Sequence record: MW735835.1
Reading direction: 5' to 3' (one strand)
DNA: 64,000 nucleotides
A program made the translations under genes and the position numbers. The notes under the pieces are model-generated. The model was not told the origin of the DNA. It saw nothing but the letters and a program-made list of their open reading frames with translations, and searched no databases. This document shows, piece by piece, positions 2,875 to 44,446 of the stretch. The first letter of the stretch is position 1; each line of letters begins with the position of its first letter.

Positions 2875-4104
2875 ATGCGTAGCTCGATTCTCTCTCAAGC
2901 TCTGAACGTCTCCATGGAGAACGATGACATCGTCGTCGAGAACCAGGAGATCAACCCGGTGACCGAAGAAACCACCGTTCAGGTGGACGAAGTCCTGGAA
3001 GAAGTGCGTGACGCCGGCGCCGTTGCCGACGAGCACGAAGAAGTGGTCGAAGAGCTGGACCAGGCTGCTGACAGCCTCGAGAGCCTGATCACCTCCCTGG
3101 AAAGCGCCATCGCCGACGGCGGCATGAGCCCGCAAGCCGCTGACGTCCACAGCCGCGCCCTGGCCATCGCCACCCGTCGCCTGCCGATCAACGCCAGCGA
3201 CTACACCGTTTCCACCGAATCCTTCGGCGGTACCGGCGACAAGCTGCAAGCCTCCATGGAAGCCCTCGAAGGCGCCAAGGAACTGCTGTCCAAGATCTGG
3301 AACGGCATCAAAACCGCCGTGCAGAACGCCTGGAAAGCAGTCGTCAACTTCGTCAGCACCATCGGCAAGTCGAGCGAAGCCCTGCGCCGCGCTGGCAAGC
3401 TGCTGATCGCCCAGGCCAACGGTGCCAAGGGCAACGCTGCTGGCAAGAAAGTCGACGGCACTGCCGTTGCCAAGCTGCTGCACAAGAACGGCGAAATGCC
3501 GTCCGGTTCGAGCGTCGGCGGCCTGCTGGCCACCATCGTTTCCAACGGCGGTGCCGTGGTTACCTCCGCCAAGGTTGCTCAGACCGAGCTGACCAAGCTG
3601 TCCGGCGCCATCGCCGCTGGCCGCACCACCACCGAAGAGCAGCAGGCTGGCTACGACGCCATCATCAACGCTCTGCCGAAGGGTGAGCTGCCTGGTGGCC
3701 GCGTGATCGAAGTCCAGGACTCCGGCATGCCGAAGCTGGTCCAGAAGGTCAACCTGAAGTCCGACAGCGTCGAGCTGGACGTTCCGTCCGTGAACGACAT
3801 CAAGTCGATCGGCCAAGGCATCATCAAGATCGCCGACTTCATCGCCGACTACGACAAGAAGTACTTCAAGGGCCTGGAGAAGTCCATCAACGACTTCGTC
3901 TCCAAGCAGGATCAGCTGATCAAGCGCATGGAGCTGGAAAAGGCCGAGACCAAGAAAGTCCGCGGCGAACTGGCCGGCTTCAAGAAGATCTCCTCGATCG
4001 CTCGCGCCGTCGGCCCGGACTACCTGTCCTACGCCGCCAACGCTGCCAAGGCCTCCTTCAACTTCGGTAAGAAGAGCCTGGCCCAGTACGCTGCTGCCAA
4101 GTGA
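2875..4104 (+). CDS. phiKZ internal head (inner body) protein family, paralog 1
   Basis: Start moved to ATG 2875 (GGAG at 2861). Acidic propeptide with VSMEN, VSTES, ASMEA motifs, then LKELLSKIWNGIK-type helix. Confidence 0.8.
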   Translation: MRSSILSQALNVSMENDDIVVENQEINPVTEETTVQVDEVLEEVRDAGAVADEHEEVVEELDQAADSLESLITSLESAIADGGMSPQAADVHSRALAIATRRLPINASDYTVSTESFGGTGDKLQASMEALEGAKELLSKIWNGIKTAVQNAWKAVVNFVSTIGKSSEALRRAGKLLIAQANGAKGNAAGKKVDGTAVAKLLHKNGEMPSGSSVGGLLATIVSNGGAVVTSAKVAQTELTKLSGAIAAGRTTTEEQQAGYDAIINALPKGELPGGRVIEVQDSGMPKLVQKVNLKSDSVELDVPSVNDIKSIGQGIIKIADFIADYDKKYFKGLEKSINDFVSKQDQLIKRMELEKAETKKVRGELAGFKKISSIARAVGPDYLSYAANAAKASFNFGKKSLAQYAAAK

Positions 4105-6941: not shown

Positions 6942-6947
6942 TCCAAA

Positions 6948-12066: not shown

Positions 12067-12069
12067 CAC

Positions 12070-28808: not shown

Positions 28809-28810
28809 TT

Positions 28811-28993
28811 GTGGACAAACGTACTTTCATGCTTCAGTTCATCCTGAATGCACGTCGTTCTGGCCGTGATCGGGATATCCATAGCGAACGCGATCGTAGT
28901 GAAATTGTGGATGCAGCTGAAGATCTGTGGAACAAGGTAAACGAGAAGTGTGGCCCGGTAGCTAATCCGCACACCCCTGTGCCGAGACCCTGA
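28811..28993 (+). CDS. small hypothetical protein
   Basis: GTG after AAGGAG. Confidence 0.6.
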   Translation: MDKRTFMLQFILNARRSGRDRDIHSERDRSEIVDAAEDLWNKVNEKCGPVANPHTPVPRP

Positions 28994-29009
28994 CGATAAG
29001 GAGAAAACA

Positions 29010-42772: not shown

Positions 42773-43315
42773 ATGACCACCTATTTAACCGAAATAGCCA
42801 GGTACGCTGCCAACCTCAAGACGCTACTGAACAACACAGCAGCCTTGATGAAAACTATCAGGGACTCGAACAGCTATCGCGCTCAAGATGTGTTCAGGAC
42901 GTTTATCATTGGTACTGGAGGTCCTTCAGGCACTGGCGGTACTGGCGACATGACTGTCGACAACCTGGGTCAGACAAACAACGTCTACCTCCACTTAAAA
43001 CTCCCCATCACCAACGCACAAGACAAGGTCTCCTTCCTGATGCGGATGGAAGGGTACAACTACGGTGCTAGCAAGATAATCAACGTAGCTTGGAGTGGTG
43101 GCATGAATGGTGGGAGTCTCCTCAAAGCCACGTCAGGGACCCATCCTGTTGATGTCTACGTCGACGCCAATGGCAACCTCGTGTGCTCGATCTTCTTCAC
43201 CAGTATCTACTACACGACTGTCAACATCGAGACCATGTGTCAAGACGACAGTAAACGAATCATCAGGGGTCAGCTTCAAGGTAAGGTTTCCCTAGCTTCT
43301 CAGATCAATTTCTAG
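42773..43315 (+). CDS. short tail-fibre-like protein, paralog A
   Basis: N-terminal amphipathic helix plus YLHLKLP...EGYNYG domain. Confidence 0.65.
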   Translation: MTTYLTEIARYAANLKTLLNNTAALMKTIRDSNSYRAQDVFRTFIIGTGGPSGTGGTGDMTVDNLGQTNNVYLHLKLPITNAQDKVSFLMRMEGYNYGASKIINVAWSGGMNGGSLLKATSGTHPVDVYVDANGNLVCSIFFTSIYYTTVNIETMCQDDSKRIIRGQLQGKVSLASQINF

Positions 43316-43324
43316 GTGAGTGCC

Positions 43325-43888
43325 ATGACTCTAACCGCCTCGATACTCAACTACACGAGTAAAGTAAAAGCCAAGATAGACAAGATCATTGCAGACAAGG
43401 ACATCATCGGCACTGACAACGTCCGTGGTAGCATCTACCGCAATATCTTCAAGGGTTTCATCCGTACGGTCAGCACGCAGGAAGGTGGACCGAGTGTATC
43501 GGGCGATTTTCCTGCTGTCGGTACTCCGTTTGCAGATAACCTGAACATTTACCTACACTTCCGGATACCCTACAACATCAACGTGGATTCCAAGATGTTC
43601 TGGTTGAACATCCGAGGTTACTGCTTCGGGGGTTCCCAGATCATCGGCACGACTGCGGTCGGGTACAGCTACGCTCCTACCAAGCAACTCTTGAACACGC
43701 AAGTGTCCTCGGTTCAAACAGCTGAGCTGTACGCGGATACCAACGGAAACGTCGTACTGTCTATTCTGTTCCCCAGCATCTACTACGTCACGCTTGAGAT
43801 TGACTCCATGATGGTAGGGAACGGAACCCCGATCAAACGCGACATGTTGCAGGTGAAATACTCGAAGTCGAATCGCGTGGTGTTCTAA
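43325..43888 (+). CDS. short tail-fibre-like protein, paralog B
   Basis: YLHFRIP...RGYCFG and YADTNGNVV...SIYY match paralog A. Confidence 0.65.
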   Translation: MTLTASILNYTSKVKAKIDKIIADKDIIGTDNVRGSIYRNIFKGFIRTVSTQEGGPSVSGDFPAVGTPFADNLNIYLHFRIPYNINVDSKMFWLNIRGYCFGGSQIIGTTAVGYSYAPTKQLLNTQVSSVQTAELYADTNGNVVLSILFPSIYYVTLEIDSMMVGNGTPIKRDMLQVKYSKSNRVVF

Positions 43889-43900
43889 ACCCTATTGTAT

Positions 43901-44052
43901 GTACAGGCAGTTGATACTGTCTAGTGAGGGGGTGATCCAGCACGAGTTTTGACCCGGAACGGTTTAGCCTCGACGGGAGTCAGTTGCATACGTTCCAACG
44001 GCGCCTGTACGACGACCCACGTGGCGGCGGTCACGTGGGTCATTTTGCCGCC
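43901..44052 (+). ncRNA. candidate structured RNA or 5' leader
   Basis: Starts at the G of TATG; 8-bp terminal stem 43901-08/44003-10; 10-bp hairpin 44014-41 whose loop is complementary to 44047-52. Confidence 0.45.
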
Positions 44053-44071
44053 TCTATCCCAGGGTATTGAA

Positions 44072-44446
44072 ATGAGCGCATCCGCTAGCTTGAATGCTCT
44101 GGCACAGAGCAGCAGTCGGTATCTCGCCCTACTGCGAGACATCATCCTTAAAGGCATTCCGCAAGTCTTCACTCCGTCTGGAAGACTCACCACCGGTCCA
44201 TTGAAAGAGTGGTATGGAACGGTAACGTCCGTCAACGGAGTGTGGACGGCCAACGTGCAGAACGCAGGGTTTGTTCAGATCCTTCACGTTGATCCTCAGG
44301 CTGTTTACAATGATACCGCGTACAACCAGCAAGTCACAGCGTCCATCAACTCTGTCTCCCTGACTTCGATCTCCGGTCGTGTCATCCGGGATGGCGGTAA
44401 AGCGGGCCCGAACTGTTCTGTCATGGTTAAAGTTACGGGAAGGTAA
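44072..44446 (+). CDS. short tail-fibre-like protein
   Basis: Start moved to ATG 44072; N-terminal helix plus beta-rich tip. Confidence 0.6.
   Translation: MSASASLNALAQSSSRYLALLRDIILKGIPQVFTPSGRLTTGPLKEWYGTVTSVNGVWTANVQNAGFVQILHVDPQAVYNDTAYNQQVTASINSVSLTSISGRVIRDGGKAGPNCSVMVKVTGR

Follow-up and report, generated by a model that had tools for sequence, protein, structure and literature searches.

The intergenic gap at positions 43889-44071 of a 64,000-nucleotide (nt) stretch of the Pseudomonas jumbo phage pPa_SNUABM_DT01 (DT01) very probably harbours a conserved, independent gene for a structured RNA. The whole stretch, called the window here, corresponds to bases 186001-250000 of record MW735835.1, and all positions below are counted within it. 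DT01 has a genome of 265.5 kb and encodes virion and non-virion RNA polymerases of the phiKZ type (PMC8541153). The overall statement, namely that a free-standing RNA of about 150 nt is encoded in the gap, belongs to a family of phiKZ-like phages and acts by docking on 30S ribosomal subunits, is judged somewhat likelier than its opposite; the 30S-binding mechanism taken by itself is a tentative reading of the sequence and less likely than not. An initial annotation of the window had suggested that the gap may hold a novel non-coding RNA (ncRNA) with a 5' end that base-pairs with a 3' segment, and this proposal is borne out by covariation in homologues. The parts of the predicted RNA, with the helices named P1 to P4 and pairing percentages given as alignment cells that form standard pairs, are listed below.

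43891-43901, + strand: promoter-like motif ending in TATG, found upstream of P1 in all DT01-like members; G43901 is the proposed +1.
43901-44049, + strand: whole predicted small RNA, about 149 nt, from the covariance-model match, with the 3' end placed after the 201phi2-1 homologue.
43901-43907, + strand: 5' strand of the terminal stem P1; 98.6% of cells paired, double changes in 4 of 7 pairs.
43908-43911 with 43916-43919, + strand: hairpin P2, loop 43912-43915; 96% of cells paired, double changes in 4 of 4 pairs; absent from the initial annotation.
43927-43940, + strand: invariant single-stranded 14-nt core in the P2-P3 linker, identical in 31 of 31 distinct members.
43956-43961 with 43991-43996, + strand: helix P3, which encloses P4; 90.7% of cells paired, double changes in 6 of 6 pairs.
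43967-43974 with 43979-43987, + strand: helix P4 with a GNRA-type loop (43975-43978); 87.9% of cells paired, double changes in 7 of 7 pairs; absent from the initial annotation.
44004-44010, + strand: 3' strand of P1, pairing with 43901-43907 and preceded by a conserved junction (43997-44003).
44014-44049, + strand: intrinsic terminator, a 12-base-pair G+C-rich hairpin (44014-44025 with 44030-44041, loop 44026-44029) followed by the tail ATTTTGCC.

The RNA was recognised as a family by comparison with distant relatives. Close ones were not found: when the gap region was compared with GenBank phages by nucleotide BLAST, only DT01 itself was returned, and tblastn with the flanking proteins did not reveal close phage relatives. 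The 124-amino-acid protein encoded downstream has one distant homologue (46% identity), located in a syntenic compost-metagenome contig (L006) that also contains a gap at this place. Between L006 and DT01 a 110-nt core region of the RNA is 91% identical, compared with 74% and 65% for the DNA of the flanking genes (77% and 46% at the protein level) and 56% for the hairpin that follows. The RNA is thus more conserved than the coding DNA around it, without containing a conserved open reading frame (ORF). IMG/VR was then scanned with the most conserved 16 nt of the element, which yielded homologous elements on contigs of 250-317 kb, phage 201phi2-1 among them. A BLAST search with the 201phi2-1 copy retrieved PhiPA3, PA1C, PS119XW, BRkr, Viktualia and others. 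In 201phi2-1 the copy lies between gp304 and gp305, at about 229,02x-229,201 on the + strand of NC_010821.1; in phiKZ it lies between PHIKZ203 and PHIKZ204, at about 212,855-213,039 on the + strand of NC_004629.1 (roughly 185 nt), and is 100% identical across about 43 Phikzvirus genomes.

A covariance model (R1) was built from six DT01-type sequences together with the proposed structure, and was rebuilt from 21 sequences (R2). Model members were found at 25 viral and GenBank loci and 16 more times in metagenomes. In total, 31 distinct versions of the family were obtained, from phiKZ, PhiPA3, PA1C, 201phi2-1 and many viral and metagenomic contigs of 150-320 kb. The DT01 match covers 43900-44011 with a score of 111.6 bits (E = 1e-20). 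Among bacterial and archaeal genomes (one per species, 185,579 species), 98 pattern matches but no convincing model hit were found. The model did not match the examined regions of Noxifer, EL and PhiEaH1 either, although these cover only parts of the genomes and do not imply absence. In Rfam 15, no hit was found for the gap (E <= 10), in agreement with the novelty supposed by the initial annotation, and none for eight diverse members including 201phi2-1, PhiPA3 and PA1C (E <= 1). None of the GenBank copies is annotated as an RNA gene and most lie under no annotated feature, while in the records of Viktualia, HHBS36_1 and HPP-Temi a 'hypothetical protein' coding sequence (CDS) is drawn over the RNA match.

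The covariation shows the predicted fold: P1 closes a junction that contains the short P2, a single-stranded linker of about 35 nt and a long imperfect P3-P4 hairpin with a GNRA-type cap, and the intrinsic terminator follows on the 3' side. The final alignment (A12) contains 33 sequences, of which 31 are distinct. Pairing was compared with controls in which the partners were shifted by 1-3 columns, and the covariation score additionally with 500 shuffles. Standard pairs are formed in 93.1% of the cells of A12, against 29-39% in the shifted controls, and 21 of the 24 pairs show changes on both sides (4-10 in the shifted controls). The covariation score of 0.629 was reached by none of the 500 shuffles, and the shifted controls did not exceed 0.104. 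Helices P1 to P4 are therefore kept by compensatory changes across diverged homologues.

P1 is the terminal stem of the initial annotation, in which GTACAGGC (43901-43908) is perfectly complementary to GCCTGTAC (44003-44010). It receives strong comparative support, with covarying versions such as GTACAGG/CCTGTAC, AGCAAGG/CCTTGCT, CCAAGG/CCTTGG and GAGCGAGG/CCTTGTTC. Its inner two G-C pairs are invariant (31/31), as is the T that follows the two Cs on the 3' strand; this T forms an A-U pair in 29 of the 31 members and a G-U pair in the other two. The internal helix GGAACG (43956-43961)/CGTTCC (43991-43996), also named in the initial annotation, is P3 and is equally well supported by comparison, for instance by the compensatory change to GGGACG/CGTCCC in L006. 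P2 is thermodynamically weak and is longer in the phiKZ-like clades, and most members have GGGA, GAGA or GTGA as their P4 loop. Two further elements of the initial annotation fared less well. Pairing of the alternative helix TGACCC/GGGAGTCA, which clashes with P4, is seen in only 60.5% of cells, and the repeat CAGTTG(C)ATAC, although present as CAGTTGATAC (43908) and CAGTTGCATAC (43981), is confined to one subgroup of the family.

Some observations weigh against this fold. The alignment was fitted to the covariance model, by which the pair counts are somewhat inflated. Unconstrained minimum-energy folds of single sequences contain P1 in 29 of the 31 members, but recover P2, P3 and P4 in only 2, 12 and 10 of them, respectively. 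As for folding energy, the z-score of the whole gap is -2.35 and is mostly owed to the 44014-44041 hairpin, while 43901-44010 alone has a z-score of -1.14; the minimum-energy fold of the whole gap does not use the terminal stem. By themselves, the calculated energies thus argue weakly for a structured RNA. An alignment of the mixed clades by MAFFT, evaluated with RNAalifold, returned P1 only, with the subgroups misaligned, and was replaced by the iterated one-subgroup model.

The one invariant stretch of the RNA lies in the single-stranded linker. Twenty columns of A12 are invariant, namely the two P1 G-C pairs, the T after them on the 3' strand, one loop G and the 14 consecutive bases of the core. 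The core is also present in all ten jumbo-phage hits that were fetched by another anchor (the P1 3' strand) and in the members found by BLAST. Its invariance is consequently not mere ascertainment, as members from an independent anchor carry it as well. The core was compared with the 13-nt 3' tail of the 16S ribosomal RNA (rRNA) as printed for Beta- and Gammaproteobacteria in PMC6288834. The site 43925-43937, i.e. core bases and the two bases before them, can pair with 13 of the 13 tail bases at a calculated duplex energy of -21.2 kcal/mol; no other + strand site of the window is as strong. For comparison, the median among the 94 real ribosome-binding regions of the window is -6.8 kcal/mol, and the best of them reaches -17.5. 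In each of the 23 members tested, 12-13 of the 13 tail bases can be paired (-20.4 to -21.3 kcal/mol). The core thus has complementarity of the Shine-Dalgarno (SD) type, and binding to the 30S subunit is proposed from this match. No ATG, GTG or TTG lies 5-9 nt after the core and no conserved ORF is present, which speaks against a site of translation initiation. When messenger RNA (mRNA) partners of the core were sought within the window, no target scored beyond shuffled sequence.

The two ends of the RNA are marked by sequence motifs. In DT01-like copies, P1 begins at the G of TATG. The initial annotation had placed the start at this G, and both the TATG at 43898-43901 and the gap size of 183 nt were verified, as were the positions of all other sequences that it quotes. 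The position agrees with the late-promoter consensus of phiKZ, (-3)TATG(+1) (PMC7618050), a consensus that is only 4 nt long here, and the copies of the phiKZ-like clade have a different upstream motif. The full 11-nt motif has 33 matches in the window when up to 3 mismatches are allowed, and 13 of these lie in the 5.5% of the sequence that is intergenic (about seven-fold enrichment). The best other match, with 1 mismatch, is located at 2788, upstream of the gene for an internal head protein. From the motif we infer that the RNA starts at G43901 of a predicted late-type promoter. A second recurrent intergenic motif, with TACATTAT, was noticed upstream of genes in the gaps starting at 12067, 33561, 45550 and 53591 (+), and may represent another promoter class of DT01.

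At the 3' end, the terminator was missed by a simple scan only because its tail has four Ts instead of at least five. Every family member carries a hairpin at this place, of unrelated sequence, and nearly all have a T-tract and an (A)TGCC tail. The distance between P1 and this hairpin is 0-3 nt in DT01-like members. In the phiKZ-like clade it is 31-37 nt and includes an extra hairpin. In 201phi2-1, the last base of the tail is at record position 229,201, which is exactly a published termination site. That site was mapped by ONT-cappable-seq and is reported among the four strongest terminators tested in vivo, with an efficiency above 99% (PMC11512511). Since the same module recurs in the window and throughout the family, and the 201phi2-1 copy ends at a validated site, 44014-44049 is regarded as an intrinsic terminator, and by analogy we infer that the DT01 RNA ends near 44049; in the numbering of the record, the two predicted ends are 229,901 and 230,049. 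The recurrence in the window concerns the gaps starting at 6942, 13191, 24595, 36640, 45550, 53591 and 54237 (+), where a G+C-rich hairpin directly follows the stop codon and is itself followed by a T-tract and ATGCC. The extra segment between P1 and the terminator was observed at L040:12972-13012, L038:3115-3150, L039:3123-3160 and L037:3130-3164; it folds as a hairpin in phiKZ and is lacking in DT01-like copies.

This assignment changes the view of the 3' hairpin in the initial annotation. The hairpin at 44014-44041 exists, but it is not limited to 10 base pairs and can form 12 with a 4-nt loop. Its loop GGCGGT is indeed complementary to GCCGCC (44047-44052), as required for the H-type pseudoknot that had been suggested. 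However, this pairing is not conserved: in other members the loop and tail share complementary runs of only 2-4 nt, and the near-identical L007 has an uncompensated change in the loop. The supposed 3' partner is the conserved terminator tail, where the 201phi2-1 transcript ends, and its role in a pseudoknot was rejected.

The genes around the RNA differ from phage to phage. The DT01-like clade is syntenic, yet the immediate neighbours vary even there, with family F4, F3 or F13 upstream and F8 or F1 downstream. The neighbours in DT01, phiKZ and 201phi2-1 show no mutual BLAST similarity. In PA1C both flanking genes lie on the strand opposite to the RNA, and in phiKZ the upstream gene is divergent. 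The variation between clades and the opposite strand in PA1C argue for a stand-alone RNA gene and not for a fibre leader. The leader function that the initial annotation had suggested, with control of fibre stoichiometry, is accordingly abandoned, as the same RNA adjoins unrelated genes elsewhere and is followed by a strong terminator. A more general version, in which a riboswitch or attenuator domain senses a ligand or factor and the terminator gates read-through into the downstream gene (in DT01 that of the 124-amino-acid fibre-cluster protein), is quite improbable. The order of promoter, conserved junction domain, terminator 0-3 nt after P1 and gene would suit it, and many '5'UTR premature termination' RNAs (UTR, untranslated region) are described for phiKZ and 201phi2-1 in published long-read work. 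Such gating is hard to reconcile with a downstream gene that is of family F8 or F1 in the DT01-like clade, unrelated in phiKZ and 201phi2-1 and on the other strand in PA1C. It also conflicts with a terminator that lies 31-37 nt away, beyond an extra hairpin, in the phiKZ-like clade. Terminator sequences are unrelated between members, which makes a conserved antiterminator impossible, and the 201phi2-1 terminator is more than 99% efficient; no riboswitch of Rfam matches.

The upstream side of the RNA allows another interpretation. In DT01 no terminator lies between the upstream stop codon (43888) and the RNA, and the fibre mRNA therefore probably has this sequence as its 3' end. The RNA might then be a base-pairing small RNA (sRNA) with mRNA targets outside the window, or a structured 3' UTR that shields the upstream mRNA from 3' exonucleases. 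Precedents exist in the small RNAs that derive from 3' UTRs and yet possess promoters of their own, and the RNA of DT01-like contigs is invariably found a short spacer downstream of a + strand gene. This interpretation is nonetheless improbable: phiKZ and PA1C lack a co-oriented upstream gene, no target in the window exceeds shuffled sequence, and a plain stabiliser does not need a 14-nt invariant single-stranded core. Least probable of all, to the point of being negligible, is a coding function of the gap, either as the minus-strand PA10_00263 (40 amino acids) or through a start of the downstream gene at TTG 43949, which would lengthen its protein at the N-terminus. The former is annotated in GenBank, and for the latter no in-frame stop codon intervenes between 43949 and the downstream gene. 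Against this, the ORFs are conserved neither in length nor in presence: among the 33 members the opposite-strand ORFs across the RNA range from 0 to 110 amino acids, with none in phiKZ, PhiPA3 and PA1C, and same-strand ORFs are absent or variable. Substitutions are compensatory within the helices, and no protein-family hits were obtained. The TTG at 43949 is replaced and the frame shifted in L006, which speaks against the translated upstream start that the initial annotation had considered as a reason to doubt the RNA, and the downstream homologue P0002 in L006 begins at the ATG equivalent to 44072. PA10_00263 is, judging from these comparisons, probably a spurious gene call. Two annotated features are concerned.

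43921-44043, - strand: PA10_00263, a GenBank CDS of 40 amino acids inside the gap and over the RNA; no other CDS of the window is on the minus strand, and searches for protein families gave no hits.
44061-44074, + strand: ribosome-binding site (AGGG) and ATG 44072 of PA10_00264, outside the RNA; spacing and sequence resemble other start sites of the window.

With a stand-alone RNA gene as the preferred interpretation, the question becomes how the RNA acts. In the proposed mechanism it would act in trans through the invariant linker core. The core, which is not followed by a start codon, would pair with the entire 3' tail of the host 16S rRNA (the anti-SD region), so that the RNA docks on 30S subunits without being translated. 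This docking might stabilise and localise the RNA, or modulate the availability of ribosomes late in infection. An invariant partner such as rRNA would explain why the core is invariant while proteins have diverged beyond recognition. It is possible, though doubtful, that such a scheme extends over several genera of nucleus-forming jumbo phages, in which the conserved RNA would dock on the anti-SD by an invariant, start-codon-less 'super-SD' of 13-14 nt and reprogramme or mark the 30S subunits of late infection. Several points weigh against docking. The match with the 16S tail was noticed post hoc, and a chance site of -21.9 kcal/mol exists on the non-coding strand of the window at 3086-3110 (-). 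The 13-nt site has an unpaired fraction of only about 35-50% in ensembles folded without constraints, and a YCC close by is a potential partner for three of its Gs. In addition, phage mRNAs use ordinary SD sequences, and wholesale blocking of the anti-SD would therefore harm the phage too. The chief competitor, itself rather unlikely, keeps the stand-alone RNA but dispenses with 16S binding: the G-rich core and the GNRA-capped P4 would be recognised by an RNA-binding protein of phage or host, for which the RNA serves as decoy or scaffold. An RsmA/CsrA-type repressor, ribosomal protein S1, an SD-cleaving nuclease and an export factor of the phage nuclear shell are candidates. Contacts with proteins, or tertiary contacts, are what a fully invariant single-stranded core and a GNRA-type loop typically point to, the core has no better-than-chance mRNA partner in the window, and complementarity of equal strength to the 16S tail can occur by chance. 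However, none of the candidate proteins accompanies the RNA from clade to clade, the match of the core with the 16S tail extends along its whole length and is not restricted to a GGA-type motif, and the P4 loop is not uniformly GGA but GAGA or GTGA in some members.

Another conserved and seemingly non-coding element was observed in three small viral contigs (L079:1030-1230, L098:3138-3338 and L131:474-674). It carries the same core (AAGGGGGTGATCCAGTC), with a G+C-rich hairpin about 70 nt further on, and L114:1101-1196 resembles it. Rfam gives no hit for this element, and the covariance model does not place it in the family. The occurrence of the same core in an unrelated element hints at a wider class of such RNAs.

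At the level of the locus, the gap ranks second in size among the 94 intergenic gaps of the window, which have a median of 12.5 nt. The description of the surroundings as an otherwise compact operon holds in this respect, but has to be qualified: 11 of the 94 gaps measure at least 100 nt, and 4 of these 11 are situated in the same fibre cluster. Apart from PA10_00263, every annotated gene of the window has + orientation. The RNA is preceded by two genes (42773-43315 and 43325-43888, +) that are paralogues of each other. They have relatives with 44-45% identity in the prophage-like contigs L002 and L003 and weaker ones in Vibrio phages, which suggests a fibre-associated module that DT01 shares with smaller phages. 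L002 and L003 do not contain the gap; this is uninformative and does not count as contrary evidence. The largest gap of the window (28809-29009, 201 nt) has no obvious hairpin and contains an unannotated 60-amino-acid ORF with a GTG start at 28811-28993 (+), which may be a missed small gene.

Work on phage 'nuclei', on host-independent transcription and on jumbo-phage therapy has the phiKZ-like phages as its main model. About 43 identical Phikzvirus copies, and a sequence that is still recognisable from phiKZ to DT01 despite unrelated neighbours, imply an important function of the RNA. The family now has a structure model, coordinates in phiKZ, PhiPA3, PA1C and 201phi2-1, and a specific hypothesis of pairing with the 16S tail. 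If true, the latter would make it a ribosome-targeting ncRNA of a phage. For the DT01 record itself, a probably spurious gene call is corrected.

Judged by its sequence, the RNA would be a new family within a known kind, the phage-encoded small RNA. ONT-cappable-seq yielded 17 '5'UTR-derived' sRNA candidates in phiKZ (PMC10914365) and 11 small RNAs in 201phi2-1 (PMC11512511). These belong to the same phage group as the DT01 RNA and share its size range (<250 nt) and its layout of a start site followed by a terminator. As the 201phi2-1 copy ends at the validated site 229,201, the RNA has probably already been seen as a transcript, and some family transcripts were probably observed without being recognised as a family. 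The RNA locus is not named in the main texts of the two papers. Unlike the present analysis, these texts report no family, covariation-backed structure, invariant core or 16S complementarity. The sRNA005 of 201phi2-1, described there as conserved (PMC11512511), lies upstream of the gp277/gp182 tail gene and is set apart by its location at a different locus. A recent review (PMC13282480) notes the expression of non-coding RNA in phiKZ in passing and describes no specific ncRNA of the group, a second (PMC12908238) mentions no ncRNA, and the published Grad-seq study does not mention the RNA locus. The terminators of phiKZ-like phages ('motif A' type of PMC11512511) resemble 44014-44049 in having a G+C-rich hairpin, a T-tract and an (A)TGCC tail. 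The DT01 RNA deviates by TTTTGCC where others have TTTATGCC, a variant that is shared by L221, and the terminator module explains only the 3' third of the gap.

Beyond these phages, three systems invite comparison. Like transcription-terminating riboswitches, the DT01 RNA consists of a conserved junction domain with a GNRA loop and a terminator directly 3' of it. It differs from them in having no conserved downstream gene or antiterminator and no Rfam match, and one copy has a convergent downstream gene. The 3'UTR-embedded sRNAs of enterobacteria have their own promoter and act by short seed pairing, assisted by Hfq. In DT01, too, one terminator serves both the RNA and the upstream mRNA, and a promoter-like motif lies immediately downstream of the stop codon; in contrast, the seed-like core of the RNA matches rRNA, and the RNA is free-standing in other phages. 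A parallel to the proposed docking is provided by the STAB-SD or polypurine 5' stabilisers of Bacillus mRNAs. These are SD-like sequences without a subsequent start codon, thought to bind the 30S subunit without being translated, and are found in Gram-positive bacteria in the 5' UTR of the mRNA that they stabilise. The core of the DT01 RNA is also SD-like and is not followed by a start codon. However, it belongs to a structured RNA of a Pseudomonas phage that stands alone and ends in a terminator, and its predicted pairing covers the whole 13-nt tail of the 16S rRNA.

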